DNA of 64,000 nt from Octopus sinensis (taxonomy: Eukaryota): the NCBI RefSeq assembly GCF_006345805.1, contig NC_043015.1, forward strand, positions 41,788,001 through 41,852,000, read 5' to 3'. The notes beneath the pieces were generated by a model that saw only the letters and a list, made by a program, of their open reading frames with translations, was not told the DNA's origin and did no database searches. Made by a program: the position numbers and the translations under genes. Below, piece after piece: positions 18,616-44,250 of the stretch (position 1 is the first letter of the stretch; the number at the start of each line of letters is the position of its first letter).

Positions 18616-18634
18616 GATGGTAGGGTGTGATTTG

Positions 18635-18866
18635 GGCGGCGAGCTGGCAGAAACGTTAAGCACACCGGACCAAATGCTTAGCGGTATTTCGTCTGCCGTT
18701 ACGTTCTGAGTTCAAATTCCGCCGAGGTCGACTTTGCCTTTCATCCTTTCGGGGTCGATAAATTAAGTACCAGTTACGCACTGGGGTCGATATAATCGAC
18801 TTAATCCGTTTCTCTGTCCTTGTTTGTCCCCTCTGTGTTTAGCCCCTTGTGGGTAGTAAAGAAATA
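18635..18866 (+). mobile_element. Full-length SINE family B1 with 16-bp TSD
   Basis: Flanked by GGTAGGGTGTGATTTG at 18619-18634 and 18867-18882. Confidence 0.92.
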
Positions 18867-19917: not shown

Positions 19918-20745
19918 TTGGGTTGTCCGGAAAGTTCACGCCGATTTATAGTAGCTTATCTTTCGACTTATTTTAGAACATGGCTGAGTTCATAAAATAG
20001 GATTTGATTACATCATTTAGAGCACAGTTTAAGCTATCTTTTTGTGGAAGAAGGTTTATGTTCCTATAACCTGTGTTAATTCTGTAATCCTTTAAAATGG
20101 AAGATAAGAAAGTTCATTTTCGGCACTTGATGCTTTGGCAATCAGACAAAAATTTCTGCAGCTCGGCTGGGAAGTGTTACCCCAACCTCCATATTCACCA
20201 GAGGTTGCTCCTTCAGATTTCCACTTATTCAGATCTCTGCAGAATAGTCTGAATGGTAAAAATTTCATTTGATTACATCATTTAGAGCACAGTTTAAGCT
20301 ATCTTTTTGTGGAAGAAGGTTTATGTTCCTATAACCTGTGTTAATTCTGTAATCCTTTAAAATGGAAGATAAGAAAGTTCATTTTCGGCACTTGATGCTT
20401 TGGCAATCAGACAAAAATTTCTGCAGCTCGGCTGGGAAGTGTTACCCCAACCTCCATATTCACCAGAGGTTGCTCCTTCAGATTTCCACTTATTCAGATC
20501 TCTGCAGAATAGTCTGAATGGTAAAAATTTCATTTCCTTGGATGACGTAAAAAGACACCGTGATGAATTCTTTACCATGAAACCACCTCAATTCTGGGAG
20601 GAGAGTATTTTCAAGTTAAAGGAAAGATGGAGACGCATTGTGCAACAAAATGGTTCATATTTGGTTGATGAAAAATGTAATGGCAAGTATTTATTGACCT
20701 TTTTCTTGCCTTTTAAAATCGTCACGAACTTTACGGACAACGCAA
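19918..20745 (+). mobile_element. Internally deleted mariner with both TIRs and an internal 265-bp tandem duplication
   Basis: TIRs TTGGGTTGTCCGGAAAGTTC and GAACTTTACGGACAACGCAA with flanking TA. MEDKKVHFRHLML is fused to LGWEVLPQPPYSPEVAPSDFHLFRSLQN...ERWRRIVQQNG. Confidence 0.9.
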
Positions 20746-21139
20746 TATTTACCTATTTATGTATTAGGCAGTATTTGATACATACAGTCACGTTCCCTAA
20801 GTATGGTCTTACGGCATAGCTACAACTACTGTTGATGCTTCTTCAAGTTCCGACTTTCGCTAGTGGAAATGAAATTCATTTCTTTTAAGAATTTGTGTTT
20901 CTACGAAGATAATGGATTCTGTAACATCTATCTTAATAATAATCGTTATTTTTATTTAACAAATATTATTCTAGCAATGATTTGTGGAGTTGGTATTATT
21001 TTTATAAATTATTTACAACGCATTTTTGGCGTATAGCAAAGATGTTAATAAAATATATTAAGTTATATATTAAATCAAATATCACCTGGATATAAAACTT
21101 AACGTCTTTGTTCATTATTCATTTTCAGAACGTGGTTAT

Positions 21140-21339: not shown

Positions 21340-21390
<51 letters not shown>

Positions 21391-21892
21391 TACAGATGCA
21401 CACGTATACACATACATACATGCATACATATGCACAGATACACACACACACACAAACAAACACTCTCATATAAATATATATGTATAAACACATATAAATG
21501 TGTGTGTGTGCGTCAAATTATTAAGTTAGATAAAGGTAAAAATTCTCACTTCATATTGCATTCGGGCTTCTATTTTTGGTTTTATCTTTGAAATTTTCAC
21601 ATTGCATTTTTATGTCTTTATAAATTATTATTATTGAGATGTCGAAATGGACAAAGCGCTTCCGTTGTGTTCAGTTTTAAAACATTTACATCCCAGCAGT
21701 ATAAGCAGAGGTTATTATTATAATACTATTCTTACACGACCCCTTTAAGAAAACGAAACACACAATTAGCTCCTTATCAGATCTTTATAGTAGGATAGGC
21801 AAGATTCGTGCAAAAGCGCCGTTTCGGATCAGTCCATTCTGGGTACCGGCACACAGTTGTTTGACAAACAAAAATTCTTCATCAAATTCTTC

Positions 21893-22311
21893 AGGCGCAG
21901 GAGTGACTGTGTGGTAAGTAGCTTGTTTACCAACCACATGGTTCCGGGTTCAGTCCCACTGCGTGGCACCTTGGGCAAGTGTCTTCTACTATAGCCTCGG
22001 GCCGACCAAACCCTTGTGAGTGGATTTGGTAGACGGAAACTGAAAGAAGCCCGTCGTATATATGTATATGTATATATGTATATATATATATATGCGTGTG
22101 TGTATGTTTGTGTGTCTGTGTTTGTCCCCCCAACATCGCTTGACAACCGATGTTGGTGTGTTTATGTCCCCGTCACTTAACAGTTCGGCAAAAGAGACCG
22201 ATAGAATAAGTACTGGGCTTACAACAGAATAAGTCCCGGGGTCGAGTTGCTCGATTAAAGGCGGTGCTCCAGCATGGCCGCAGTCGAATGACTGAAACAA
22301 GTAAAAGAGTA
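21893..22311 (+). mobile_element. Full-length SINE family A
   Basis: Complete head, CORE-like box, microsatellite and tail. Confidence 0.9.
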
Positions 22312-22558
22312 AGTCATTTTTCTGTTCATTTATTTTCTTTTTCTTGATTTTGAGTTTCGTGGTAGGGATTAAGGAATTCGCTTCGCGACAGCCTGATTTC
22401 GTGTTCAGTCCCACAGAGCGGTATCGAGGGCAAATGTATTTTACTATAGCCTTGGAACGTCTAATGCACTATGAGTGAAAATAACTGAAGGAAACTGCAT
22501 GGAAGCCTGTCACATGAGTCTCTGTGTGCAAGTACGTATGTACATAAGCATGTACATG

Positions 22559-22589
<31 letters not shown>

Positions 22590-22594
<5 letters not shown>

Positions 22595-22890
22595 GGAGTA
22601 AGCACATAAATGTGAAACAAGGTGGGTAAAAGAGTACTCAAATACCAGAGGTAGAGTAATATGCTTTATTTAAAAGCAGCAGAAATATAACAAAAGCTGT
22701 TACTCAGAGTTTCACGTTCCCGTTCGTCGGACAGTTTTGGTTTCACGTTCCCGTTCGTCAACTGTCCGATGAACGGGAACGTGAAACTCTGAGTAACAGC
22801 TTTTGTTATATTTCTGCTGCTTTTGAATAAAGTATATATATATATATACGTAAAGTAAATGTCGAACAACGAAAGTGAGTACTCAACACT
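22590..22890. mobile_element. PLE-derived fold-back repeat (72-bp inverted arms carrying hammerhead-like motifs)
   Basis: Arms 22665-22736 and 22760-22831 are reverse complements with 2 mismatches. Confidence 0.75.
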
Positions 22891-23375
22891 GCATTCGCAG
22901 ATATTTTGTTTCCCTGTGTGTGTATTAAGGCTACCATTGGTTTCATGTAGAAAAAAAATATTTTATAAAGCTAAACAATTTTTCAAGCCGATCACATGGG
23001 GGAACGATATCTGTCTCCATTTTGAATGAAAACACAAAACGTATAAATAGCTAGTTAGAAAATCTCAATAAGAGATGAAAGCAGTAACTATACTGGAAAT
23101 TAATGTTTGTCTCCACTTCAGCATGGCTCTTCCGTACGAACCGACGTCACCACCATTTTTAACTCCAAGAGGAAGCTTCCTCTAGCTGATTGTGGATGCA
23201 ATCTGCAGCTCGAGAGGAGGAGTAGATAGGCAGCCAACAACTGATGAAGGGTCGTTCTTTATGTTACTTGTCCTGGTTTCCATTTGATTCTCCCATTGTT
23301 TGTGTACTCAACTCATTTGTTTTCGTATTTCATGTCGTTTACTGTTTGGTGACGTCCTGTACCCATATATCCATA

Positions 23376-23411
<36 letters not shown>

Positions 23412-23469
23412 TGTGTGTGTGTGTGTGTGTGTACGTATACATATATATGATGAATCTGTTGCGAAGCGG

Positions 23470-24095
23470 CTTATAAATCTAATATTTTCCTATCCTTTCT
23501 TAATACTGGTTCCCATATGCTGCTCAAATCTGCACTCGGTCTCCTTAGGAGGTTATTATGTCCTAGCATATGTGCTGCCTCTTTTAGTTTTCTTATTTTC
23601 CAGTGGTGTTCTCTGTCTATTATTTTAATTTCATCCCACAGGGGTAGGTGGTCTCCATTTTTCCATACATGATCAGCTATACCCGTTTTATCAATATCTT
23701 CTCGTGACACAGCTTTGCGAAGTTCGTCTACCCTTATTTTGAGGGAGCAGCATGTTTCGTCTTTCTATAACCTACCACAGCTGCATGTGATAGAATACAC
23801 GCAGTCTTTGGTCATATTCTCTTCTATTGGTGATTTTACTCGAAGGAGATATTTGCGAAGTACTGTATTACTCTTGAATACTGTCCTGATGTCATTTGGG
23901 CCCCAATCTTTTGTATCTTTTCGGAGGGGCCTTTCACATAGGGTAGACAGGCTATGGACAGTTTATTGTCCCCCTCAAAATAAGGGTAGACGAACATCTC
24001 AAAGCTGTGACACAAGGACATATTGATAAATCGGGTATAGCTGATTATGTACGGAGTGACGACCAGGCCGTTTTGCATAACAACCGTTCAACCAA
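23470..24095 (-). mobile_element. Penelope-like element C-terminus (RT thumb to GIY-YIG)
   Basis: LPYVKGPSEKIQKIG, CVYSITCSCG, and TGIADHVWKNGDHLPLWDEIKIIDREHHWKIRKLKEAAHM. Confidence 0.85.
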
Positions 24096-25330
24096 GCTGC
24101 CAGGGAGACGGCGAAGCCATAGGACTGCACCGTGGCAGATTGGGAAGAAACAGCAGGAGAACTGAATTGAGCCAACAATGCTTCTTACATTGATATTGAG
24201 CGGAGGGACACTAGAACGTCAACGGTCATGATCACCAACCCCTATGTAGATAGTAACTACAACGGATGCAAAAGGGTTGAAAGGAAGTTCATAGTTGTGC
24301 TATCAGCTAAAGAAAGACTAAATGTGACGTAAACTTCAAGTTTAAATTCATAATAGAACTGAATGGCAACAGAGGGTCACGAGAAGCTGTGCAAACAGTA
24401 GGACGATCCTCGTATTGTTGAAACAGAAACTTGTAATCCTGTCTATGAGTCTCCGCAGCTGTATCGTTCACTGTATCTACTCACAAGGGTCTGGTCAGCC
24501 CGCGGCTTCTGTAGAAGACAGCAAAGGTGCCACGCATTGGTATTAAACCCCAGACCGTGTGGTTGTTAAGCAAATTTATTACAATACAGCTACACGGATG
24601 AAATATCAATTAGTACCTCAAGATCAGGGGATTAATCTTAATAATGCTCCGCCTCCCCTCGAAAGAAAGGTGATGCAATGCTATGTAAATATGGAAGACT
24701 TTAAAATAGATTCCAGCAAGAACAGAGTGTTTTTGTTTTTGTTATTGTTCTTTTTTTTGTTTTTGTAAAACAGCGTCGAAATAGAAGCGGATTAAAGGCG
24801 AACCTGTCAGAGAACTTTTAGTATTGTGATTACCAATGGCAGAACATTAAACAGGTTGGTCGTAGGGGAAATAGGGAGTGGAGGAGGGGAAGGAAGAGAG
24901 ATGGTAGACAAGGAGGAGGAGGAGGAGGTGGCGGAGAGAGGTAGTAAATGGGGACATATTTCGTGTTTGCCTTTCTGTGTAAAAATTTTTTCTTGTCTCA
25001 TTAAATCGAAAATCATTTATTTTTAGAGCATTCAGACAAAAGAAGTGCTTGCTTCTCTGTGTGTGTGCGTGTGCGTGTGTGTGTATGCATGCGTGTGTGT
25101 GTGTGTGTAAATGCACACACACACATCTATCTCTCTCTCTCTATATATATACAGATGCTGTTTCGCGCACACGCACAAACATTGAAATAGTCGAAAGAAA
25201 ACAATAGCTTCAGGTGTTTTGGTTTAGGACCGATCCTTAGGTAAACAAGTGTTGTGTGTTTGAAATACACATAAAATATAATAAAAGTTCTGTCGAAGAT
25301 GCTGTCTCCATGGACGGGTATTGTTTCACT

Positions 25331-25765
25331 GAGGCGGCGAGCTGACAGAACCGTTAGCACGCCGGGCGAAATGCTTAACATCTGCCGTTGCGTTCGGAGT
25401 TCAAATTCCGCCGAGGTCGACTTTGCCTTTCATCCTTTCGGTTCGATTGAATAAGTACCTATTTCTTTACTAACCACAAGGAACTAAACACAGAGAGGAC
25501 AAACAAGGACAGACAAACGGATTAAGTCGATTATATCGGCCCCAGTGCGTAACTGGATCTTAATTTATGGACCTCGAAAGGATGAAAGTCGACCTCGGCG
25601 GAATTTGAACTCAGAGCGTAACGGCAGACGAAATACCGCTAGGCATTTCGCCCGGATTGAATAAGTACCAGTTACGCACTGGGGTCAATGTAATCGACTT
25701 AATCCGTTTGTCTGACCGTGTTTGTCCCCTCTATGTTTAGTCCCCTGTGGGCTATAAAGAAATAA
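25331..25765. mobile_element. SINE B copy with an antisense SINE B1 nested inside it
   Basis: The insert (about 25459-25654, minus) is flanked by ATTGAATAAGTACC direct repeats that are part of the host SINE. Confidence 0.85.
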
Positions 25766-25799
25766 AAATAAATAAATCTAATTGTTTCTACACAGACAG

Positions 25800-26435
25800 C
25801 GTGCTGGCGGAAACATTAACACCCCGTTCAAAATGCTTAGCGGTCTTTCGTCTGTCCTTACGTTCTGAGTTCAAATTCCGCTGATGTCGACTTTGCCTTT
25901 CATCCTTTTGGAGTCGGTAAATTAAGTGCCAGTTGCGTAATGGGGTAGATCTAATCGACTGGCCCCATCCCCTAAAATTTTGGGCTTTGTGCCTAGAGTA
26001 GAAAAGAATTGTTAGCACCCTGGACAAAATGCTTAGCAGCATTTCATCAGTCTTCGTGTTCTGAGTTCAAAATCCGCCTGAGTAGACTTTGCCTTTCACC
26101 CTTCGGGGTCAATAATATAGGTACCAGTTGAGGACTGGTGTCGATATAATCGACTAGCCCCCACTTCCCCAAAATTTCAGGCCTTGTGCCTATAGCTGAA
26201 AAGAATATATATATATTATGGACCCCCAATCAAAGACGGAAGAATCGTTAGCACGCCGACAAAGTACTTAGGGGCAGTTTGCCCGTTTTTACGGTCTGAT
26301 TTGAAATTCCTCCGAAAACTTATTTGCCTTTCATCCTTTCGGAGTCGATAAAATATGTACCAGTTGCGTACTGGGGTTGATATAATTGACTTACCTCCTC
26401 CTCTGAAATTGCTGGCCTTGTGACAAAATTTGAAA
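25800..26435 (+). mobile_element. Three consecutive SINE B copies (B2, B2, B3 tails)
   Basis: Shared head and central module with different 3' tails. Confidence 0.75.
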
Positions 26436-26787
26436 CACATATATCTTATCAACCCCAATGGAATAAAATGCTAACTTGATCTCAGCAGGATTTGAACACA
26501 GCACATATGTATTGGAACAAAAACCACAAGCCATTCAATGCCAAATTTTTTTTTAATTTTTCTTTAATTATTATGCTTTATTTATTCTTTAATTATCATG
26601 CTTTTTAATCGCAAGAGTCAACAAGATACAAAAAGCGTATTTACTTACAAAATAAAAATTATAATGCATTATAGGGATACGATATCGACGACGTAAGAGA
26701 AGAGTGAAATTGTTTATCAAATATTTCTGATTTAATGAATTCTTCCACAACTCAATATTTATTCTTCTTTCTTCACAACAAAGACAT

Positions 26788-27137
26788 AGGCGCAGGTGTG
26801 GCTGTGTGGTAGGAAGTTTGCTTCCCAACCACACGGTTCCCGTTTCAATCCCAATGTGTGGCACCTTCGGCAAGCGTCTTCTACTATAGCAGCCTCGGGT
26901 CGATCAACGCCTTGTGAGTGGATTTGGTAGGTGGGAACTGAAATCAACCCATCGCCCATATGTGTGCATGTGTGTTTGTCTTTATGTTTCTGTTTGTCCC
27001 TCGTTACCGTTTGATAACCGCGGTGTTGGTGTGTTTATGCCACCCCTGTAACATAGCGATTTGGTAACAGAGACCGATAGAACAAGTGCTAAACTTAAAA
27101 GGAAAAATAGATACTGGGGTCGATTCATTCGACTAAA
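26788..27137 (+). mobile_element. SINE family A copy
   Basis: Head and body match family A. Confidence 0.8.
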
Positions 27138-28352
27138 ACAAGATTTACTATTACAACTACCAAGCCTGATTCAAATTAATAGCAGGAACAATATTTACCC
27201 TGAAGAAGTAAAGAAATATATATTTATAGTAAAGAAATAAATATTTACCCTGAAGAGATCGTGCAAATTATGCATAAATCCCTTCATATAAAAATGTAGC
27301 AATTTGTAATTGATACGATCGTAACACGTGTCGGACAATTACTATGAATAAACCAAGCAGAAACTTTGAAGGTTCGAATTCTTCGTTTTCCTTATCATCA
27401 GTACTATATGTTGGTTTTGCAGTTCCTATACTTACCACGCACAGCTCCTTACATGTGAATTTTATTTATATATAATTTTATATGTATTTCTATATGTTTT
27501 TATATTTCTATATTTTTACGTATGTTTGGTTTTATTCTTTATACCCTTGGAGAATTTTTACGCCTCTACATGCATGATTTATGCTAATGAGTATAAATAT
27601 ATACGACTCAATTACAATGATTGAATATTTTCATTTATGCGTTCAGGAATATGTTTGACTGCCTAGAATTTGCATTTTCAATTTCCTCTACTCTGTATAT
27701 ATATATATATAGACGATGGATTTCCACGCAGTTTCCACCTATCTAACTCATTCATGAGGCAGTAGTTGGTCCGGAACTATAGTAGAAGGCATCTTTTACC
27801 AGCTGAATGGACGTGAAATTGAGCAATGTGAAATAGAGTGCCTTGATCAACAACACAATGCGCTGCCGAGATTCGAAATCACGGACTTAACGATCGTACG
27901 CCGAATACCCTTCACCACTAAGACACGAGCCTTCGTGCTTATACATAGCCATACCTGCGCCTAAAAAAGATGTCTTAAGTAATGTAGAAAAATGTTTTAA
28001 TTACAGTTAACTACGCTTTGAAATTATTAATAAAAAACACAAAAAACGACAGAATCATTTTGGCAATTTCTTTCATAATTTAATGGTCTTTTATTATTTT
28101 TTTTACACAATTAAAGGTTCAAAGGAGCAGCAGATATACTGAACATTTGGGTAACATGATCGCTAAATGGCATTTGAAATACAGCAGTTATCAAGAACAA
28201 AGGTTAAGCAGCAGTTTGAGAGAGAGGAAGAGAGAGAGAGAGGAGGGAATTTCATAACAATGGTTGTTTGGATGTCGTTGTGATGGATAAACTTGGCAAC
28301 AAGAGGTACGCCATCGTTGCTAGTGGAGGTAGGTAGGACTACGTTGCTTTCG

Positions 28353-28531
28353 TCAGGGGCAAATTTTGAAAATGTCACAGTTTGATCGACAGCAAGAATC
28401 GGCGAGCATGCGCACGGCCGACCATCTTCGTTTGACAACGGGAACGAAAGCATTTGTCATGTAGTTGATTTCATTTGTTCGTCGTCGTTTTTGGTGCGTC
28501 ATAATGGTTGATTCGTCTTGGATAATACCAC
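28353..28531 (-). CDS. Terminal coding exon of a putative secreted Cys-rich peptide precursor (insulin A-chain-like)
   Basis: Acceptor ttctaattattacattttttatatattttcag|G, entered in phase 1. Encodes GIIQDESTIMTHQ-KRRR-TNEINYMTNAFVPVV-KRR-WSAVRMLADSCCRSNCDIFKICP*. AATAAA lies at about 28095-28090. Confidence 0.6.
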
Positions 28532-28610
28532 CTGAAAATATATAAAAAATGTAATAATTAGAATACCTATAGGCATGCAAATGGGTTTCTTCTTATTTTT
28601 TTGTTCCTTT

Positions 28611-28932
28611 ACTTGTTCACTGCGGCCATGCTGGAGCACCACCTTTAGTAGAAGAAATTGAACCCAGGATTTATAATTTGTAAGCCTATTACTTATTCTA
28701 TCGCTGTAAGGTATGGAGACGTAAACACACCAACATCAGTTGTTAAGCGATGGTGAGAGGACAAATACAGACACAAATAACAAATACATATATATATATA
28801 CACGACGGGCTTCTTTCAGTTTCCGTCTACCAAATCCATTCACATGGCTTTGGTCGGCCTGAGGCTATAGTAGAAAACACTTGCCCATTTGGCTGATAAG
28901 CAAGCTTCTTACCACTAGCCACTCCTGCGCCT
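28611..28932 (-). mobile_element. SINE family A copy (internally deleted head)
   Basis: Reverse complement of the family A tail, microsatellite and head. Confidence 0.85.
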
Positions 28933-28946
28933 ATGTGTATATATGT

Positions 28947-29135
28947 ACAATAATCCCTCACCATATCGCGGCATACCTATCGCGGACTCTTCAGTATATC
29001 GCGGGTTTCTGCGACCGGTAGCTATTTATATTCTTTTGAGATTTTAATTATTTCTGTAATGAAATGAGCATTTCCACAACTAAAAATTAATAAATTAATA
29101 AATAAAACTAGAGTACAGTACAGTACTGTACTGTA
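28947..29135 (+). mobile_element. pogo/Tigger-like element 5' end
   Basis: TA-CAATAATCCCTCACCATATCGCGG resembles Tigger-type TIRs. Confidence 0.5.
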
Positions 29136-29142
29136 GACAAAA

Positions 29143-29480
29143 ATGGGTGCAGCTCGGCTGGGATGTATTACCCTACCATCCATATTCCCCAGATATACCT
29201 TCTTCGGATTTCCGCTTATTCAGGTCTCTGCAGAATAGTCTTAATGGTAAAAAATTTCAATACTTTGGATGGCGTAAACAGATACCTTTGTTTCATGAAT
29301 TCTTTGCCATGAAACCACCTCAATTCGGGGAAGATGGTATTTTCAAGTTAAAGGAAAGATGGAAGTGCATTGTGCAACAAAATGGTTATTATTTGGTTGA
29401 TTAAAAATGTAATGGCAAGTATTTATTGACCCTTTTCTTTCCTTTAAAAACTCGGCACGAACTTTCCAGACAACCCAATA
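29143..29480 (+). mobile_element. Mariner 3' fragment with right TIR (same family as 19918-20745)
   Basis: LGWDVLPYHPYSPDIPSSDFRLFRSLQNSLNGK...ERWKCIVQQNG and TIR GAACTTTCCAGACAACCCAA-TA. Confidence 0.9.
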
Positions 29481-29616
29481 TATATATATATAATATATAT
29501 ATAGAGAGAGAGAGAGAGAGTGACAGAGAGAGATGGAGAAGGGAGAGAGAGAGACTGACAGACAGACATAAAGAATGAGTCACCTCAAAAGTCCATAGAC
29601 ACACGCCTCATTATAC

Positions 29617-29835
29617 CTATTTCTTTATTACCCACAAGGGGCTAAACACAGAGGGGACAAACAAGGACAGACATAGGTATTAAGTCGATTACATCGACCC
29701 CAGTGCGTAACTGGTACTTAATTTATCGACCCCGAAAGGATGAAAGGCAAAGTCGACCTCGGCGGAATTTGAACTCACAACGTAACGCAGCCGAAATACC
29801 GCTAAGCATTTCGCCCGGCGTGCTAACGTTTCTAC
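29617..29835 (-). mobile_element. SINE family B1
   Basis: Reverse complement of the B1 consensus seen elsewhere; its 3' end abuts GGTA. Confidence 0.9.
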
Positions 29836-30057
29836 CGTGTTGTGTCTATGGTCGCTTTTCGTTGCTGCGATGCCAAACAAGTTGTACTATTACAAATTAC
29901 GCCGACCGGGCTTGTCTGCTGAATGCTAGACTAAATGTTTTCTGTACTTGAAATGACATTATTTTGTTTTGTTTATAGAAATGTAACTGTCAGACAAGAA
30001 AAAAAAGATATGATCGTACCTATTTACATTTGCGATGTCACTGTGTGTTTGAGTGCG

Positions 30058-30085
<28 letters not shown>

Positions 30086-30093
<8 letters not shown>

Positions 30094-31093
30094 ATAGAGG
30101 GCATTATTACACATAAATGCCTCACACTAGGAGGGACAAAGTCATTACTACCAAAAATTATACTAATCATACCCAAATGCAGTTTTTCAAAGCAAGACAT
30201 TTAAAAATGAATTATGTTCTGTATCACCGTGATTTCACATACAACTTGCGTCTAATGATCGTCAGCAGAACTGATTCTGAATACATCATAAATAAACTAC
30301 CAACCTTACGTAGCGGAGACGAACAGACAACTGCTCACTCCGGCCAAGCACATGGAATGTTTATAAATCATATATCCGGTAAATGGCGGGTATGATTTGG
30401 GTATGATTAGTATAATTTTTGGTAGTAATGACTTTGTCCCTCCTAGTGTGAGGCATTTATGTGTAATAATGCCCTCTATACAATATAGATATAATTAATT
30501 TGTTCAAAAGAAAAAATTATTTTCGGATTCTTTTCTTTTATGAGGTTTTCACGCTAGCTACCCGATAATTTCTTGTTAAGATCCTTATAAGAAGATTATC
30601 CTTAATTGTTAAACTTATTCCGAAATACTTTTCATTACCCGACATGCAGTTCGTAAAAAGCCCGCCATTTACCGGATATATGATTTATAAACATTCCATG
30701 TGCTTGGCCGGAGTGAGCAGTTGTCTGTTCGTCTCCGCTACGTAAGGTTGGTAGTTTATTTATGATGTATTCAGAATCAGTTCTGCTGACGATCATTAGA
30801 CGCAAGTTGTATGTGAAATCACGGTGATACAGAACATAATTCATTTTTAAATGTCTTGCTTTGAAAAACTGCATTTGGGTATGATTAGTATAATTTTTGG
30901 TAGTAATGACTTTGTCCCTCCTAGTGTGAGGCATTTGTGTAATAATGCCCTCTATACAATATAGATATAATTAATTTGTTCAAAAGAAAAAATTATTTTC
31001 GGATTCTTTTCTTTTATGAGGTTTTCACGCTAGCTACCCGATAATTCTTGTTAAGATCCCTTATTAAGAGATTATCCTTAATTGTTAAACTTA
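30086..31093. other. Local inverted-plus-tandem segmental triplication
   Basis: 30086-30390 is the reverse complement of about 30661-30965, and 30396-30617 repeats about 30873-31093. Differences are mostly small indels. Confidence 0.9.
30673..30785 (-). CDS. Candidate internal exon (phase 2 in, phase 1 out)
   Basis: gtctaatgatcgtcag|C...ATCCG|gtaaat. The open frame RTDSEYIINKLPTLRSGDEQTTAHSGQAHGMFINHISG joins in frame to the 28531 exon. The pyrimidine tract is weak. Confidence 0.25.
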
Positions 31094-31385
31094 TATAATA
31101 TAATATATATATATATTATATGTGTGAGTGTATGCATATGTGTTGTGTGTGTGTGCATAGGTGGATATTTACGTATATATATATTATATATATATACATA
31201 TATGTATGTATATATATATGTATGTATATAATAATATATATATATATATATGTATGTATATATATACAATATATATATATATATACATATATGTATGTAT
31301 ACTTTGATACTTTGATACTTTGATAGGTTTCGGCCATTATTGGCCCAGGCCATGTCTAACTTAATAGCATATATACATATATGTG

Positions 31386-31419
<34 letters not shown>

Positions 31420-31509
31420 CTTACATATATATCTACATATCTGTATACATATATACTCACATCTATCTATCTATCAATACATATATATATATATATACAC
31501 ATATATATG

Positions 31510-31541
<32 letters not shown>

Positions 31542-32149
31542 AGTGAATGTATGTATGTGTGTGCGAGTGGGTGTATGCGTTTGTTTGTTGTGTGTTGCTG
31601 TGTATGTGTATATGTTGTGGATATGTATATGTCTATCCAAATTTCTACATGTGCGTGTGTGCGAGCGTTTGTATATGTGGAGATTTACGTATGTATATTG
31701 ATGAAGGTGCCCGTATGTATATACACTTTTTCCTCCAATCGCTAACTCGATCTTCCTTTTCTTCCCACCAGATTTGCTCTTTACTCTCTTTCCCAACTAT
31801 TTTCTTTCCCGGTTATTTTCGTTTCCAACTCCTCATGTGATTCCTGGTTTCTAACGAAATATAAGGGCTTCATTCAAAGGTAAATATTGCATTATTTGAT
31901 TCTCTGTCTGAAGAACTTCTAATGCGAGAAGTCTTACATGTTTTCTACTTCATGTACAATTTTGTAACTCCTATTAGTAAAGGAAACGTGTGTAATGGTG
32001 AATAAATAATGGTCCCTCCCCACCCGCGATTTTCCCCAATCATCTGTTTTCATATATAATTACTCTGCAAATAATATTCCCAGAATATATATGCACATGC
32101 ATACATGCATGCACAGATAAATACATACATACCTATATACATACATACA

Positions 32150-32370
32150 CTAAGTTGAGAAATCTGCAGTTACTCCAACCAGGTTAGAACCTCACGTTTA
32201 TACCTGTAATTATTGGGTGCCTGGGATATGCAACACACTACCTAAATACCAATCTTGAGAAATTAAGCTTCTCAAAACCGGAAAGGAGAAAGCTGACTCG
32301 GAGACTACAGATCCAAGCCATCACAGGAACTGTAAAATTCTGTAAAACTTTCCAGAAGTTTATCGGTCAA
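32150..32370 (+). mobile_element. R4/Dong-type LINE extreme C-terminus
   Basis: LRNLQLLQPG*NLTFIPVIIGCLGYA...RRLQIQAITGTVKFCKTF. Confidence 0.75.
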
Positions 32371-33000
32371 ATATATATGAGCACGTCTAGATATCCAACT
32401 ATATACATGAGTATACATACATAAAGCAAAACATACAAATCTGCACACATACATACATACACACATACATACCTACATACATACACACACATACATACAT
32501 ACACACATACATACCTACATACTTACATACACACATATATACACACACATACATACATACACACATACATACGCACACATACATACCTACATACATACAT
32601 ATCTACATACATACATACATACATACATACAAAAATACCCTGTGGTTGATGCTGAAATTCCAATGAAGGAGCCTTGGATTCAGGTTAGAAACCAGCTCTT
32701 TCTCTATTGGCAAGAAATCTTGAAATAAAACTGAACAATGACGTACATACATACATGTGTATGTGTGTGTGTGTGTGTGTGTGTGTTTGTGTGAGTGTGT
32801 GTTTGTGTGCATGTGTGTGTGTGTGTGTGTCTGTGTGAATGTTTGTGTGTGTCTGTTTGTGTAAGCATGTTGGAATGTCATTAAGCGTTGAGACCAATTC
32901 TGTCAATCCATGATCACAAACTTCTGACTGAACACAGAGCCATTGAATATTAAAATAATAATAAATAAATAAATAAACGCTACCATTGCAAATATCTTAC

Positions 33001-33152
33001 CAAATATCTTCATTGCATTCTCGCAAAAGATTGCTCCCTAATCGGACAAAACATTTACTGACAACCTGATCCATTATTCGCTCGAGCATAAGTTTCTCAT
33101 CGCCATCATGTAGCCTGCTTGTATCACATTTATTAAAACCACATCGACAGTT
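33001..33152 (-). CDS. Candidate Cys-rich exon (phase 0 in, phase 2 out)
   Basis: ttgctgttgatacag|AAC...ATTTG|gtaaga. Encodes NCRCGFNKCDTSRLHDGDEKLMLERIMDQVVSKCFVRLGSNLLRECNEDI, which contains a C-x3-L-x3-L-x3-C motif. Confidence 0.25.
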
Positions 33153-33586
33153 CTGTATCAACAGCAATCTTCTCCATTGTCATATCGGAGATTGTTTTTC
33201 GATGAATATAAAATATTTCATTTGCTGATGTTTTATAGGATCAGAACTTGTTTATTTCCACAGCAGACCCTGTCGACGTTGTCTGTCATTTTACCTTTCT
33301 TTTATTTTTTTTCTTTACCGACTTAATTGTTTCAGCCATTGAACTGCGGCCATGATGGGCGAGCATCTTGAAGAGTTTTAGCCGAACAAATCGGCTCCAG
33401 CGGTTATTTTCTCTTCCATGTGTGTGTGTCTCTGTGTTCATAGAGTCTGCTGCTTCTACTACAGGTTTTTTTTTACCGAACCGCTAAGTTAAATGGACGC
33501 AAATAAACAAACACTGGTTGTCGGACGTTTAGCGGAGGTGACAAACACAAAACAATAACACACACACACACACTCGCACACATACG

Positions 33587-33628
<42 letters not shown>

Positions 33629-33725
33629 TCACACACATAACCACGCATATAGTTAGACATAGATAGATAGATAGATGGATGGATGGATGGATGGATGGAT
33701 GGATGGATGGATGGATGGATGGATG

Positions 33726-33843
<118 letters not shown>

Positions 33844-34458
33844 ATCGATATATATGCTGTCCGAAATATTCTCTGCACAAGGCTACATCATTGTTTAGCA
33901 TCTGAAACCTAAAAGGGGGGTAATAACGTGTGACCCCGAAACCCTAAAACGATGCCAAACTTCACAAGAACTCATTGCCATTATATCTTTCTAATAAGAT
34001 TGCATTCATCTTTGTTTTAAAACTTGTTCTACATTGATTAAATAAGAAAAGAATAAACAAAATGAAGTATATTGTTCTCAGCGATTGATCTTTCGCCAGA
34101 ACTAATTCGATTATGTGAAGTCCTATGATCATCGCACACCATGTATATTTTAATATTTATGGATCATCGCTGATCCAAGCCAGAATACAATACTGTAAAT
34201 ATTAACCTCGTGTATAACGCGACCCATAAACTTTGAAATCTATTTCAAACGCAATAAAACGATTTAGCATTACATAGATTTTGTGTACACCCATAAATAA
34301 GGCAAGTATGCCGTGTGGTATGAAGCTTGCTTCTTAACCACATGGTTCCCGGTTCACTCCGACTGCGTGGCACCATAGGCAAGTGTCTTGCACTATAATA
34401 GCCTCGGGCTGACAAAAGCCTTATAAGTGGATTTAGCAGATGAAAACCGAAACAAACC

Positions 34459-34494
<36 letters not shown>

Positions 34495-34822
34495 AAAGTA
34501 ATTAAGTTTCAAGTGAGTTCTGTTGAATTCACATGAATGAGGTACTTAACTTAGATGCACCAGAAATCTATATGGTATTAAATCTCTCTTTATATCTCCA
34601 GAATTCAAACATTCGTCATTATTATGGATAGATTTACATTTTCAATTTCTGTGAAACTAAGAGGTTTTTTAAAATACTTTTTTAAAGCCTGTCATTTGAC
34701 TGTGCAACATTAGAGATCTTTGGATGTCCGTTTATTATCTAAATCTGATTTTTATAGAACTATCCCGAATGTTTCATGAGTGTAGCCTCACCCCCTTAGA
34801 TGTTTTGAGAACTCAGATGTTT

Positions 34823-34911
34823 TTTCGGCTGATGAGTACGGGCCACGTGTATTTGCTGCAATATTTGCAGCCTTAATAAAGGTGTCTTCGTACGAAACAA
34901 TTGTACCGAAA
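34823..34911 (+). ncRNA. Type I hammerhead ribozyme with canonical core and long stem II insertion
   Basis: UUUCGG-CUGAUGA-GUACG[48 nt]CGUAC-GAAA-CAAUUG-UA-CCGAAA: all core nucleotides are present and stems I, II and III pair. Confidence 0.8.
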
Positions 34912-34967
34912 TATTGATCCATTTTTGTTGCTTTTTTCTTGCTTATATATATATATATATATATATA

Positions 34968-35093
34968 CAGTAAGAGGTTTCCAAATAGGAAAGCGTTGTG
35001 CTTTCGTGAATTTATTCCTTTTCATTCCATTCGTGAATTTATCCCTTTTTTGTGTTCTAGCACAACGCTTTCCTATTTGGAAGCCTCTTATTG
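34968..35093. mobile_element. MITE with about 35-bp TIRs and TA TSD
   Basis: TA-CAGTAAGAGGTTTCCAAATAGGAAAGCGTTGTGCT ... AGCACAACGCTTTCCTATTTGGAAGCCTCTTATTG-TA, with 2 mismatches. Confidence 0.8.
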
Positions 35094-35384
35094 TATTTCT
35101 ATATGAATAATATATAGTCTAATGACCAATTCGTTTTTTGTGCTAGGCCACTGGTAATAATAATTTATTATTACCCTATTTTATTATATATATATATATT
35201 TAGTGAAGGGAAGAAATGGAGCCGAACGAAGATTCTACAAAATTCCTTTTTATTATTTTCTACACATGGTGTCTTTTCTGGTGTGATTTTTGCTACACAG
35301 GTACCGGTTAAATTTTGAATAATCCGTAACAAGATAATTCATTTATCCATTTCATTAAATATATATATATATATATATATATAT

Positions 35385-35935
35385 TGGGTCATCCCATAAA
35401 TAATGCGGTTTTTTATACTTCTTTTATTTATCAAAATTAAGATAAACAGAGTTCTCTTTTAATTTTCATTTCCTACAATGCTCTTCCATCTATCTGGTAG
35501 ACTTGCAAGGCCCCTCTTCCAAAATTCACTTGTCCGTCATGAAAATACTCCTCCAGTACTGTTCTAACCTCGCCTACAGAATTCTTATTTTTTCGTCCAA
35601 ATGATTTTGAAGACTGCAGAATAAATGATAATCAGATGGGGCAATGTCCGGGGAATATGGTGAGTGGCCCATCGTTTCCCATTCAAATTGCTCCAGCCTT
35701 TCGAATGTCATCTTCGTTGTACGGGGCCGAGTAGAAGAATACCTTTCGTTTTTTCTTCTAGCGCTGACTTACACTACTCAAGCTGCTCGCAATAGATCTC
35801 CTTTGTTATCATTTGGTTTGGGTTTAAAAGTTGAAAGTGGACGAAACCTTTCATATCCCACCAAACAGATAACACCGTTCTTGGGTGAAGACCTTGGGTG
35901 AAGGCCTGGGGTGCCGGTGTTTCTCCTTTCCCTAC
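35385..35935 (-). mobile_element. Mariner transposase pseudogene, 3' half with TIR
   Basis: GETPAPQAFTQGLHPRTVLSVWWDMKGFVHFQLL...IYCEQL and MGHSPYSPDIAPSDYHLFCSLQNHL; TIR-like TATTGGGTCATCCCATAAATAATG. Confidence 0.85.
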
Positions 35936-36010
<75 letters not shown>

Positions 36011-36027
36011 GCAGGCAGATAGATAGT

Positions 36028-36060
<33 letters not shown>

Positions 36061-36072
36061 CAGACAGACAGT

Positions 36073-36103
<31 letters not shown>

Positions 36104-36634
36104 ACACGGAGTATACATGACCATATCACTCGTTGCATCTCTGTGCAGCTCTGCTTTGATGACTAACTCTATCGACCTGCGCAAACTCCCATACGAAGTC
36201 TTGTGTCGGTGTCTGTCTAAAACTTCCAGTATATTCTATTTTAATTTACCAATTCCTCCATGCATGGAATGAATGCAACGAACAACTAAACACATTAACT
36301 ATATCTAATAGGTTAATTACATATGAATTTGATTATAATTTGGTCGAAGGTTAGAGTTAATTATTTTTTTATAAAGTAATTCTTTATAATAGTTAAACGC
36401 TCCGTGTGTAATTGAGACTAATTATTCGCGCCAACTAATTAAGTAATAGCATGGTTTAATGATTTAATAAAGTTACAAGTGTTATATGAACATGTGGGTG
36501 TGTATGTGTATTGGTTTACATGTGTTTGTGTATGTGTTTGTGTATGTATGTGAAAGTCTGTATATGTAAATATATACATACTTTTATGTGTGTGTGGAGT
36601 ACATATATATATATATATATATTTATATAGCCTT

Positions 36635-36815
36635 TTGTTCTTTTACATGTTTCAGTCATTTCACTGCGGCCATGCTGGAGCACAGCCTTTAGTCGAACAA
36701 ATCGACCCCCAGGATGTATTCTTTGTGAGCCTCGTACTTATTCTATAGTTTTCTTTTGCCAATCCGCTAAGTTACAGGGACGTAAAGACACCAACATCGG
36801 TTGTCAAACACACAC
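36635..36815 (-). mobile_element. SINE family A 3' half
   Basis: Reverse complement of the tail. Confidence 0.8.
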
Positions 36816-36912
36816 AGACACACACATATATATATATATATATAAATATATGTATATATACATATATACATATACATATATATATATATGTATGTGCATA
36901 TATATATTTGAG

Positions 36913-36961
<49 letters not shown>

Positions 36962-37097
36962 TGTATATATATATAATATATATGTATATAATGTATATAT
37001 ATATATATATAATATATATATACATATATATATCTGTGTATCTGTGTGTATGTGTCCGTGTATGTATATATATTATGTATATATCGCTCCTCATTTA

Positions 37098-37139
<42 letters not shown>

Positions 37140-37887
37140 GCGTATATATGTGTACTCACACACACACACACGCATATACTCAATGTATGTATGTATATAT
37201 ATAAATACACATGTAGTTATATAAGTATGTATGTATTATCTATCTCATAAATCTGCTTTTGGTGAGTATTTTTTTGCTCTGTGTATCTCAGTGTGCGTAT
37301 AAATACATATGTGTGTGCGTGTGTGTCCGTGTGTGTGTGTGTGTGGATCGTTATACGTGTGTTTTGATGCAGCTAAAGATATGAATTTTAATCTTTAGTC
37401 TTTGAATAATATCACACAAGATAGAATAAATTATAATTGAATATCTCTATATTTATATCTCCGTCTCTATATTTATAATCATATCCGTATATTTATATCT
37501 CCATCTATGTTTCTATCGGCATCAATATCAATTCATCCTTTTTAGTTCTCTTCCCCTTTCGCCATCGCTTTTTAGCCTATATAGGAATGTATATATTCTT
37601 TTGATTCGTCTAATCGTTGCAATCATTAAACTGATGCCATCCTGGGGCACCGCCTTAAAGGGCAAAATTGATTATATCGACCCCTAGTACTTTGTTTAAT
37701 AATTGTAGTATCGATCTTGATAAAAAGCTAGAGGGAAGTCTCTGGCGTAGACAGACGTTCAAGTTTGCCTACGATATACATATAAATGTATATATGTATT
37801 TATGTATGTATGTCTATATATACATAAATACATACATACATATACATATACATATACATATATATATATATAGATAGATATATATAT

Positions 37888-37976
<89 letters not shown>

Positions 37977-38110
37977 TAAAATACATATGTATACGTATGA
38001 AACAGAATCAAACACCGGCAAGATTTGTGGCGGTCTGCGTTAGCAAGGAATATATTTGTACTCAGAGCATTAAGACATAGTTCAAATTCTGCCGACGTGG
38101 ACTTTAGCTC

Positions 38111-38485
38111 ACCGGGCGAAATGCTTAGCGGTATTTCGTCTGTCTTTGCGTTCTGAGTTCAAATTCCGCCGAGGTCGACTTTGCCTTTCATCCTTTCGGG
38201 GTCGATAAATTAAGCACCAGTTACGCACTGGGGTCGATGTAATCGACTTAATACCTATGTCTGTCCTTGTTTGTCCCCTCTATGTTTAGCCCCTTGTGGG
38301 TAATAAAGAAATAGAAATAGGTATTTCGTCTGTCTTTGCGTTCTGAGTTCAAATGTCACCGTGGTCGACTTTGCCTTTCATCCTTTCAAGATCAATAAAT
38401 TAAGTACCAGTTGCGTACTGGGGTCGATCTAATCGACTGCCCCCATCTCCAAAAATGTCGGGCCTTGTGTCTAGAGAAGAAAAGA
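38111..38485 (+). mobile_element. SINE B1 joined at GGTATTTC to a B2-tailed unit
   Basis: ...AAAGAAATAGAAATA|GGTATTTCGTCTG junction at about 38320. Confidence 0.85.
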
Positions 38486-39149
38486 AAAAATTAAATATTG
38501 CAATACAAATGTATTACTTTCCAGATGAATTTATTTTTAGGTTCGCTGCCTGAACACAGCTTTGCTAGAATATATACAGTGAAGCTTTACTATAGCGTCG
38601 TAAAATTATCGACTGCTATATCCAGTAAACTTTGGTACCTTGTTGCACCACTATTCTGTATATACATATATATATATATATATAATATATTGTGTTACAC
38701 TAACTAGCGATGCACGGTATTAGAATTTTCAGCTCGATTTATATATAACAAACAACTCTATAACGTTGTTAGACTATCTACAGAAGTGGAGTTCGGACCG
38801 GTAGGTTGTATTAGCATTGAGTCTTATTAGCTGTAATAATGAAGCCGAACCAAGTAGTGATATTTTGAAAGCATTTGATATGACTGTTTCAGGTCCGACT
38901 AATATATAATTGGAAGTGCATCAGTTACTAAAGAAGGTTTACGTCATATATGCAAGTCTACAATGCATTCTGTCTGATCTGCCAATCTACCTCATATCTT
39001 GTTCCTTTAATAATATGTAATAATGCATAATAGTACGAAATGTAAGGAATACATTTATAAATAATCAAGCAGTGGTTTGCTTCGATGTGAAAAGCAAACG
39101 ATATGGTTACAATTCAAGATTTATCTTGCAAGATCTTCATCAGTGAAAG

Positions 39150-39386
39150 AAACTTTTCTACTCTCGGCACAAAGCCCGAAATTGCGGAGGAGAGGGCAAG
39201 TCGATTAGATCGACTCCATATGCTTAATCGACTTAATCGACTTAATCGACTTAATTCATTGACCCCGAAAGGATAAAAGGCAAAGTTGACTTCGGCGGAA
39301 TTTGAACTCAGAACGTAGCGGCAGACGAAATTCCCTCAAAGCATTTGACTCGGAGTGCTAACGTTTCTGCCAGATCGCCGCCTTTC
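39150..39386 (-). mobile_element. SINE family B2
   Basis: Reverse complement with the B2 tail and an internal (CTTAATCGA)n expansion. Confidence 0.75.
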
Positions 39387-41203
39387 ATCTGTGAAAGGAT
39401 GTTGGTGTTCTGTCGTATTAAAAAATGCAGACGGAGTCAAATTAGTCTGTCTAATTTGCCTTTCAGTAGATGCGCGGCCATCGCAGATAAATTCATTCGT
39501 AATGTACAGCATATTTGTTGATAATCTGAAATGCAAGTTATACATTTTTTGTGAAGGCGGGAGTCAACTCGTCATAGAATCGCCGGGAAGCTGTCATTAT
39601 GTACGGAGTGTCTTGGATGTTTTAAATCTGGCAGAAACCATCCGTTCCAGATATATACATGTCAGATTCCTTCCGGGGAGATAATGAGAAAGAGGAAGCG
39701 TAAGTGAAAGGGAGAGAGAAAAGAAGTATCCTTATTAAGCGGCATCGTGTTACATATTTTATTTCTCATTTTTCGTAAAATATAAAGAATTTAGAATTAG
39801 ATTTGAATTAAAAATTGTCCTTATTTGGCACGTGATTTGATCCGAGACCCTGTTTGAAACAAGCAATAACAGCATCGAAGACAGATTTTTAACTACACAA
39901 AAGCTGTCGACTTCACTTAATACTTTATTTTATTTCTTTTTGAAAATTTTCGCCCCACTATCTGTGACCTGGTCACTGATACTATTCTGCCGGAAATACA
40001 TAAAGAATTTAAACCAAATAAAAATGTACTGCAATATTTTTATCATAGAATATACTGCAGTGTTTTTCATGAAAAATCTGAAAAAAATCTCTCAGCCAAA
40101 AGAGGAATTGATTCTTCGTGCTTTCTACAATTTACCAATATTCTATCTTTCTACTTCAACTTTGATCCCGTTCCTATTAAGCTATTTACTTTTTCCATTT
40201 CTTATCGAGTTGCTGCGAATAGTCCGGGAAATATACGAGACCACATTCATGGAACGATATCAATAAATTTCTCGATCGGTGAGGTCAATGTTATCAATTT
40301 GAACTGCTGACAACAAAGACATCACATTTAAGTAAACCTAATGTTGTTCATATACTCATGTTGTTGTTGTTGCTGTTGTTGTTTTTTGGGGGGTGTTTTG
40401 AACTATCTATTTTGCGAGAATTTCAATCACTAGATTTAACATTTCCATTATGGCCGCCGAAGCCAGGGTTAATTAAATTATCAGTCGAAAGTTCTGGATG
40501 TTGTATCGAGCGTTATATTAACCTCTGTGTGTTGGGATATCAATTATAAAGACATTATATATTGTTATTAATATAGGTTTTATATGCGCTTCTTTTTTCT
40601 TTTCTTTTTTTTTTTTTTGTATGTATGAGAACGAATCATAGAAAGGGGAATTCTACGGAAGACAGTTCTTTTATCCAGAAATGGTCTCTTTTATGCTCTC
40701 ATTTTGTGTTACGTATGTTGCAATACACGGTATATGCTACTAAATCACACTCGCTCGCGAGTGACGGCAGTCTATTCTATTGCACAATATATATATATAT
40801 ATGTGTGTGTATGTATGTGTGTGTACGTATGTATGTATATATACATTTATTTATTTATATATATATGTATCACATAAATCTCGTAGATTATGTCGGTTCC
40901 AAATTTTGGCACAACGCCAGGAATTTTGCGGGGAGGGGTAAGTTGATAACATCGACTCCAATATTCAACTAATACATATTTTATCGACCCGGAAAGGATG
41001 AAAGACAAAGTCTGGCGTGCTAACCATTCTGCTAGTTTGTCGCATTAGGAAAACAAATAATATTAATGTTAGTTCACAATGAGGTAAAGCAAATGTTATA
41101 TCATTTTCGTAATAGCATTCAGAAAAAGATGCCTTCGGCACATTTGGTGTAGTGTTTTGGTGGAAATATATATATATATATATATGATATATATATATAC
41201 TAT

Positions 41204-41559: not shown

Positions 41560-41659
41560 NNNNNNNNNNNNNNNNNNNNNNNNNNNNNNNNNNNNNNNNN
41601 NNNNNNNNNNNNNNNNNNNNNNNNNNNNNNNNNNNNNNNNNNNNNNNNNNNNNNNNNNN
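41560..41659. other. Assembly gap (100 N)
   Basis: Run of N. Confidence 1.
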
Positions 41660-43647: not shown

Positions 43648-44217
43648 AATCCCCTTCCTTCTTTCACCACTCTCTTTCTTTCTTTCTCACGCACACACCA
43701 AACACGCGTTCAAAAACATTTGAATGATATGTCTGCCGCAGTAGCATATTATATAATATTAGATAATACATCAGTACGCAATTGTATTTCAACTCTACCC
43801 GCATCATTCTTAGTGCCAGAAATGGGAAAACAAATTAACCTCAAATTAACCTCGGTATTCATTCCGGTAACTTAAAGAACTTCAGAGGCTGTGTCGGTTT
43901 GCATCACTTGATAACGGTCGTCGCCTACCATTGCCTAATAACATTATTCAGAACAAAAAAAAAAGAAAGAAAGAAAAATAGTTTATGATATTAGCTAATA
44001 TTATTACGTAATATCTTTGGTTTAGTAATTCCTCCTCCGTACCTACTTTTATTTCCTGCCTCCCAGGCTTTAATTAGCAGACAGAGATATCTCCTCGGAC
44101 CTTACAAGCTCTGTGGCAACCATCTTTTCGTGAAGGATGCGATAATTACGTTTGAAAGGGAATGCCAAAGAATTATTCTTATATTCCTGAACAATATCAT
44201 TGTTTTGCATATAATAT

Positions 44218-44250
<33 letters not shown>

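Follow-up and report, generated by a model that had tools for sequence, protein, structure and literature searches.

In insulin-superfamily genes of the relaxin/Dilp8 type, one phase-1 intron interrupts the C-chain region and the signal peptide leads directly into the B chain, while genes of the Dilp7 type have a further intron, in phase 2, and a spacer that sets the B chain apart from the signal peptide (PMC11863921). Here we describe a locus in a stretch of 64,000 nucleotides (nt) from Octopus sinensis (assembly GCF_006345805.1, contig NC_043015.1, positions 41,788,001 to 41,852,000 of the forward strand; hereafter the window), in which positions 28079-28531 very probably constitute the last exon of an octopus gene for an insulin/relaxin-superfamily prepro-hormone that most resembles the relaxin/Dilp8 type. 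This gene, which coleoid cephalopods share, gives rise to polyadenylated mRNA in cuttlefish and is a third member of the superfamily in octopus.

The receptors of the described relaxin-type ligands are LGR3 for Dilp8, and RXFP1/2 and RXFP/LGR3 for the relaxins and RGPs; none of these was found in molluscs, and the RXFP/LGR3 type is reported lost there (PMC11863921). The A chain of Drosophila Dilp8, which ends ...YCCLNQCEEEFFC, has the same CC-x3-C-x5-C spacing as the octopus peptide. An earlier reading of the window from its letters alone (the sequence-only reading) had likened this spacing to that of alpha3/5 conotoxins and proposed either a divergent insulin/relaxin-like peptide whose A chain is shorter by three residues, or a convergent four-Cys peptide. 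The spacing is indeed present, but the Dilp8 A chain better explains the likeness.

The gene is already on record, and the statement of the sequence-only reading that it is not a described gene applies to function and structure, for which no description was found, but not to the databases. The O. bimaculoides orthologue is entered in RefSeq as LOC106869569 / XP_014770853.1 ('uncharacterized protein'), bears the UniRef name 'Insulin-like domain-containing protein', and is labelled 'RLP', as is a squid protein, in a 2025 supplement, where this is the name of the relaxin/RLP/RGP/ILP8 group (PMC11863921). In the literature, no account was found of the peptide features, octopus expression, receptor, function or structure: a full-text search returned no paper mentioning CCRSNC or LOC106869569, the sequence is absent from the mollusc neuropeptide survey PMC6425005 and its supplements, and the octopus optic-gland and peduncle papers examined do not mention the gene.

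Precursor architecture and orthologues

The exon encodes a 58-amino-acid (aa) peptide in the order GIIQDESTIMTHQ-KRRR-TNEINYMTNAFVPVV-KRR-WSAVRMLADSCCRSNCDIFKICP-stop. An exhaustive HMMER search with this peptide against 1.84 billion representative proteins returned two 126-residue proteins that end in it, while a word-indexed protein search with the same query gave no match; only the exhaustive search succeeded. One of the two, P0001 ('Hypothetical predicted protein [Octopus vulgaris]', GCA_951406725.2), is 100% identical over the exon and is the window's own gene model. The other, P0002, is the O. bimaculoides protein LOC106869569, 98% identical over the exon.

P0002 consists of a signal peptide (MAFTSFRFWSTTVAVFVLCWILSSA), followed directly by a B chain with C-x11-C (YRIDPCSKYTPYRIVALCIWRDRS-KR) that is closed by R-S-K-R, then a C-peptide (ALTQAIEQPQSIFPKKAS/GIVQDESTIMTHQ-KRR-TNEINYMTNAFVPVV-KRR) and the A chain (WSAVRMLADSCCRSNCDIFKICP). 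The B-chain Cys segment is CSKYTPYRIVALC in octopus and CDKNAAR[LQ]ILAHC in decapodiforms, both with C-x11-C. Conserved basic sites flank the C-peptide: the B chain is followed by RSKR or RWRR, and the A chain is preceded by KRR or KRK. The divergent insulin/relaxin-like peptide with a shortened A chain is thus supported by the precursor of the orthologue, in which the signal peptide, C-x11-C B chain and phase-1 intron within the C-peptide that the sequence-only reading had predicted are all recovered.

The O. bimaculoides locus (L001) contains two coding exons, at 5001-5205 and 20383-20560, the first of which is continuous from the ATG through the B chain. They are separated by a 15.2-kb intron that interrupts an A/GT Ser codon within the C-peptide and is therefore in phase 1 (junction L001:5205/20383). 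The RefSeq extent of LOC106869569 is 116 kb in the dataset of PMC11863921, implying distant 5' untranslated region (UTR) exons, which fits an acceptor located immediately before the ATG in L001.

In the window, the acceptor reads tgcctataggtattCTAATtattacattttttatatattttcAG/GT (longer reading ggtattCTAATtattacattttttatatattttcAG/GTGGTATT, with the slash at the junction) and the exon starts at 28531 on the minus strand. This acceptor (28531/28532) is the one found in the gene models of both O. vulgaris and O. bimaculoides, and both annotated proteins contain the same split A/GT Ser codon (...PKKAS/GI...), giving entry in phase 1. The open frame from 28529 is GIIQDESTIMTHQKRRRTNEINYMTNAFVPVVKRRWSAVRMLADSCCRSNCDIFKICP followed by a stop, and the remaining two frames run into stops. 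It is this A-chain frame that both annotated models use, and not the WYYPRR... frame that had been considered as an alternative. The phase-1 entry, the two multibasic sites, the 15-mer, the 23-mer and the stop all lie on the minus strand where the sequence-only reading had placed them, and its UTR of approximately 260 nt before AATAAA measures 257 nt from the stop. Its description of the acceptor as the strongest in the unique DNA of the window is roughly right: by a crude ad hoc score, the site is strong, ranking in the top 12 of 3,075 YAG sites. Both exon and UTR consist of unique sequence, flanked by SINE-like (short interspersed element-like) and microsatellite repeats.

The O. bimaculoides gene shares with the window the acceptor, the intron phase, the 3' UTR, the AATAAA signal and the amino acids of the A chain, and differs in the length of the intron (15.2 kb, vs more than 35.5 kb in the window) and in having a correctly annotated N-terminus. 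The O. vulgaris gene model, which spans about 190 kb, begins in upstream exons, reads the exon-1 region in another frame (IDGIHIVPVLVDDSSGLCAVLDIIKRLPYRS), and then jumps to AIEQPQ...; as a result, when compared with L001:4997-5207, P0001 is without a signal peptide and without the B-chain Cys. The segment that it skips corresponds in O. bimaculoides to gtgcag...acgcag, a 76-nt GT..AG stretch. Because the skipped segment matches this stretch exactly, the N-terminus of P0001 looks like an error due to an intron invented by the gene predictor, rather than the product of a deletion. The residues of P0001 in the alternative frame are identical to the same O. bimaculoides frame at 29 of 31 positions, and the one internal change is synonymous in the true frame.

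Conservation across cephalopods

Window positions 21362-40880 (minus strand) are colinear with L001 25560-11820. Across this region, the window and O. bimaculoides are 98.9% identical in the coding sequence (28353-28531) and 98.9% identical in the 3' UTR (28085-28352), compared with 91.9% in the upstream intron (28532-28800; 80% counting gaps) and 90.1% past the poly(A) signal (27940-28084). Substitutions occupy 5 of 443 exon positions vs 35 of 401 flanking positions (Fisher p = 1e-7). The coding differences comprise one I to V change in the C-peptide (28523, window to O. bimaculoides), one synonymous change in the A chain (28362), which leaves its amino acids identical, and a single indel of 3 nt (28486-28488), which is in frame and converts KRRR in the window to KRR in O. 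bimaculoides.

The 3' UTR (28085-28352) is as conserved as the coding sequence, and identity drops to 90% directly after the poly(A) signals. This pattern suggests that the 3' UTR itself may be under regulatory or structural constraint.

Conservation extends to the decapodiforms. The Sepioteuthis lessoniana RLP (ENSUKOP00000000666.1, PMC11863921 supplement) can be aligned with P0002 from end to end (BLASTP E = 1e-18, 32% identity). Its six Cys are all conserved, as are both spacings; KRK precedes the A chain, and the protein ends in -ICP. A profile search added two further decapodiform proteins, P0005 and P0006, with cuttlefish contigs from 20 or more RNA-seq runs, and squid and cuttlefish have the signal-B-C-A order of P0002. 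P0005 occurs on 20 contigs, each about 1.05-1.1 kb long and drawn from different sequencing runs, two of which are larval transcriptomes of Sepia esculenta; several of the contigs end in poly(A), and they are therefore spliced mRNAs. In all five cephalopod sequences, CC-x3-C-x5-C and the K-R-[RK] preceding the A chain are kept, and the squid and cuttlefish A chain has the four Cys at unchanged spacing, with [LI]-A two residues ahead of CC and ICP at its end.

The multibasic sites are not all conserved to this extent. The sequence-only reading had made conservation of the Cys and dibasic residues a check on the peptide; the six Cys and the KR[RK] before the A chain are kept in squid and cuttlefish, but the first multibasic site is not, and the position of the octopus KRR(R) is occupied by KKQK, KKLK or KKME, with no clean dibasic site. 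The 15-mer TNEINYMTNAFVPVV that follows has the same sequence in O. bimaculoides; in decapodiforms its conservation is poor. The KRRR and KRR sites that the sequence-only reading took to release it as a spacer peptide are present in octopus, but cleavage at the first of them, freeing the 15-mer, is doubtful because of the residues that decapodiforms have there.

Selection was compared along the precursor by the Nei-Gojobori method, from small counts between two decapodiform species (P0005 and P0006). The pN/pS ratio is 0.14 in the signal peptide, 0.13 in the B chain and 0.00 in the A chain (no nonsynonymous change, 2 synonymous ones), compared with 1.13 in the C region. Both hormone chains, A and B, show purifying selection and the C-peptide is neutral, which is the signature of a processed two-chain prohormone.

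Comparison with known systems

The octopus gene has the layout of relaxin/Dilp8-type genes, with a lone phase-1 intron in the C-peptide and no spacer between signal peptide and B chain. The decapodiform RLPs (S. lessoniana, Sepia esculenta P0005, and P0006) resemble it in C-x11-C, CC-x3-C-x5-C-P, KR[RK] and the R-x-[KR]-R after the B chain, and differ in overall sequence (32-36% identity to octopus), in having CCKMGC, with a Gly, where octopus has CCRSNC, and in a B-chain K-x3-R-x2-L where octopus has K-x4-R-x-V.

Dilp8 and the arthropod gonadulins likewise have six Cys and only one intron, of phase 1, in the C chain, are too divergent for the Pfam Insulin profile, and fall in a shared clade in PMC11863921. 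The B chain of Dilp8 is C-x12-C rather than C-x11-C, and there is no evident identity with the octopus protein beyond the Cys. Vertebrate relaxins and INSLs and the starfish RGP1 and RGP2 share the signal-B-C-A order, the absence of a signal-B spacer, the phase-1 intron and C-x11-C. They differ in the number of residues between the last two A-chain Cys, which is eight (ten in RGP2) as opposed to five in octopus. Three further resemblances can be drawn with sequences in PMC11863921 Fig. S2: a hydrophobic residue and Ala two residues before CC (LADSCC or IAHVCC in cephalopods, GMADYCC or GIASYCC in the compared sequences), a decapodiform CC-x-x-G-C with the relaxin-type Gly, and a decapodiform K-x3-R-x2-L at the position of the relaxin R-x3-R-x2-I. 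A profile-profile comparison (hhalign) with the starfish RGP1/RGP2 and Dilp8 gave an alignment of the whole precursor, although a weak one (P = 8e-4, probability 24%), in which the two B-chain Cys and the KR site are paired and the A chain is aligned with a gap of 3 residues.

MIPs and the cephalopod ILPs (Sepiella japonica SjILP, and O. bimaculoides ILP-7 and ILP-3) belong to the same superfamily and have two-chain precursors with dibasic processing. The MIP type has eight Cys and C-x-CC-x3-C-x8-C, whereas the octopus gene has six Cys in its mature chains and none two residues before CC. Genes of the ILP7 type have an extra phase-2 intron and a signal-B spacer, neither of which occurs in the octopus gene.

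Proposed maturation and action

The precursor would enter the secretory pathway by translocation into the endoplasmic reticulum and fold with three disulfides of the insulin type, of which two link the A chain to the B chain and one is internal to the A chain. Cleavage at RSKR and KRR would be by furin or prohormone convertases, and a carboxypeptidase would trim the ends. The secreted heterodimer, consisting of B (about 24 aa) and A (23 aa) chains, would act on a cell-surface receptor.

Evidence against and alternative explanations

Several observations weigh against the identification of the exon as part of a relaxin/Dilp8-like prepro-hormone. Pfam Insulin (PF00049), proposed by the sequence-only reading as a check, matched none of the exon peptide, P0001, P0002 and the squid RLP, even at E <= 10. 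The weight of this result is limited by the controls: Dilp8 also fails, as does the squid RLP, and an RLP from the annelid Owenia is borderline, with 23.3 bits where the cut-off is 23. None of the five cephalopod sequences has the canonical A-chain spacing CC-x3-C-x8-C, from which Dilp8, accepted as a member of the family, departs in the same way. AlphaFold models have low pLDDT (49.6 from a single sequence, 51.3 from three sequences), and Foldseek and phmmer searches of the PDB returned no insulin, only noise; the insulin fold and the disulfide pairing are therefore putative. Exon 1 lies outside the window, where only the C-terminal half of the precursor is visible. The protein collection yielded no transcript contig from octopus, its octopus clusters being composed of genome-annotation entries only. 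PMC11863921 itself carries the caution that molluscan sequences in the relaxin clade may owe their position to long-branch divergence or convergence.

That the exon is a chance open reading frame (ORF) behind a chance acceptor, with no gene, is a negligible prospect. Outside low-complexity sequence, the A chain is the one match in the window to CC-x3-C-x(4-10)-C, while Markov-simulated 64-kb windows contain a mean of 0.44 such matches. A dibasic site with four Cys and a stop within three residues arises in 1.5% of the simulated windows, a rate that would mean dozens of false positives in an octopus genome of gigabase size, so that the pattern alone cannot exclude chance. The matter is settled by external evidence, namely the orthologues, the exon-specific conservation, the mRNAs and the pattern of selection. 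It is improbable, though less remote, that the O. vulgaris copy is a decaying or mis-assembled pseudogene whose exon 1 no longer encodes a signal peptide and B chain. Such decay would account for the out-of-frame reading of exon 1 in P0001, with its missing B chain, for the absence of exon 1 from the window and of an octopus transcript from the protein collection, and for an intron much longer than that of O. bimaculoides, with a 100-N gap and transposon insertions. Against this, the stretch skipped by P0001 points to a predicted intron and not a deletion, the alternative frame is nearly identical between the species with its internal change synonymous in the true frame, and the terminal exon is open, with identical A-chain amino acids and an indel that is in frame.

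The remaining alternatives accept a secreted peptide and concern its kind. Alpha3/5 conotoxins are short single-chain peptides from signal-pro-mature precursors, and a single-chain four-Cys peptide of this type (a toxin, or a salivary or pheromonal peptide) mimicking an insulin A chain would fit the CC-x3-C-x5-C spacing and the missing Pfam Insulin match. The four Cys of octopus, though, belong to the A chain of a B-C-A precursor whose B chain carries another two conserved Cys; this B chain and its furin-type site are under purifying selection, 10 residues precede CC in the mature chain, the transcripts come from whole cuttlefish larvae and from no venom-gland library, and the x5 spacing has a precedent within the relaxin family in Dilp8. 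The convergent conotoxin-like peptide is not supported, and we consider it very improbable. Harder to dismiss, although still rather unlikely, is that the same gene encodes what is functionally an insulin/MIP-type ligand of the insulin-receptor tyrosine kinase, its relaxin-like placement being a long-branch artefact. The reported loss of RXFP/LGR3-type receptors from molluscs and the possibility of divergence or convergence raised in PMC11863921 speak for such a ligand. So does the absence from octopus of the CC-x-x-G-C glycine and of a clean RxxxRxxI motif. A single phase-1 intron in the C-peptide is, moreover, not exclusive to relaxin types, being also present in other superfamily members such as the insulin genes. 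A relaxin-type peptide is favored by the RLP label in the PMC11863921 dataset, by the relaxin-like CCKMGC and K-x3-R-x2-L of decapodiforms, by a long N-terminal extension of the A chain with [LI]-A-x-x-CC as in the RGPs, and by the x5 spacing common to Dilp8, where the known cephalopod ILPs have C-x-CC-x3-C-x8-C.

Features of the window

The coordinates of the exon, its intron and the repeats are given in Table 1. Searches by tblastn with both full proteins (P0001 and P0002) located only the terminal exon inside the window.

Table 1. Positions of the hormone exon and of other annotated elements within the 64,000-nt window
Feature	Position	Strand	Remarks
Phase-1 intron, at least 35.5 kb of it	28576-64000	minus	tblastn; colinear with the intron of O. 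bimaculoides up to 40880
3' splice site of the phase-1 intron	28532-28575	minus	CTAAT branch-point-like motif 28557-28561, T-rich tract, AG 28532-28533
C-terminal part of C-peptide, (S)GIIQDESTIMTHQ	28491-28531	minus	GT 28530-28531 completes the split Ser codon
Multibasic site KRRR	28479-28490	minus	read from sequence
15-residue segment TNEINYMTNAFVPVV	28434-28478	minus	C-peptide end or separate spacer peptide
KRR prohormone-convertase site preceding the A chain	28425-28433	minus	K-R-[RK] in 5/5 cephalopod sequences
A chain WSAVRMLADSCCRSNCDIFKICP, 23 residues, CC-x3-C-x5-C	28356-28424	minus	coordinates verified
Stop codon TGA	28353-28355	minus	read from sequence
3' UTR	28079-28352	minus	AATAAA 28090-28095, ATTAAA 28079-28084
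SINE-like copies	18632-18866, 29618-29836, 38101-38318, 45632-45862, 48574-48790, 51946-52165, 59721-59945		
Decayed transposon ORFs	20400-20819 (+), 29147-29404 (+), 44105-44551 (-)		recognised by eye

The distance from CTAAT to the AG of the acceptor is 26 nt in the window and 54 nt in O. bimaculoides, owing to a 28-nt indel that separates CTAAT from the polypyrimidine tract (window 28541-28556 / L001:20341-20368; inserted in O. bimaculoides). Because this indel shifts its distance to the AG, CTAAT may not be the branch point common to both octopuses.

An ORF at 33001-33179 (minus strand) was considered as a candidate B-chain exon on account of C-x11-C, Leu at +4 and +8, and a GTAAGA donor. 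It was rejected as a chance look-alike because the donor is in phase 2, the wrong frame, there is no signal peptide, and the DNA is without an O. bimaculoides counterpart.

The intron contains a perfect inverted repeat of 280 nt (30111-30390 / 30661-30940; 100% complementary, with a 270-nt spacer), surrounded by near-identical repeats of 99 nt and 159 nt; possible explanations are a palindromic duplication of very recent origin, a foldback element and an artefact of assembly. The SINE-like repeat, roughly 230 nt long, is present in about seven copies (88-94% identical) and matches L001:5634-5867, which sits about 430 nt downstream of the O. bimaculoides exon 1. Two of the three decayed transposon ORFs, judged by eye, have mariner-like transposase tails (...PYSP.(V/I)APSDFHLFRSLQNSLNGK...), and the third is a reverse-transcriptase-like fragment (YFLPKIHKPNNPGR); Pfam gave no match for them at E <= 0.01. 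An assembly gap (41560-41659, 100 N) also lies in the intron, and the colinearity with O. bimaculoides ends just before it, at 40880. A non-repetitive ORF of 113 aa (62995-63336, minus strand; MNERHTFFQTSLKENF...) is without a Pfam match. Seven long ORFs of the window, apart from the hormone exon, were scanned with Pfam and matched nothing, and Rfam has no match in the window.

Implications

Endocrine control of growth, maturation and post-reproductive death in octopus is poorly understood at the level of the ligands, of which only two octopus ILPs are usually cited. The wrong N-terminus of P0001 means that homology screens of the O. vulgaris proteome will miss this third gene, whose short A chain is unusual and otherwise seen in Dilp8. 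A relaxin-type ligand in a phylum reported to be without RXFP/LGR3 also raises the question of its receptor partner. One tentative possibility, which we consider less likely than not, is that the gene encodes a coleoid Dilp8-like 'mini-relaxin', with an A chain shorter by one helical turn, which was kept despite the loss of RXFP/LGR3 and signals through a different receptor. Candidates would be the insulin-receptor kinase, a G-protein-coupled receptor of the LGR4 or GRL101 type, or something new. If true, the peptide would belong to an unrecognised octopus hormone axis, possibly concerned with reproduction or growth timing, as for relaxin-type peptides elsewhere.

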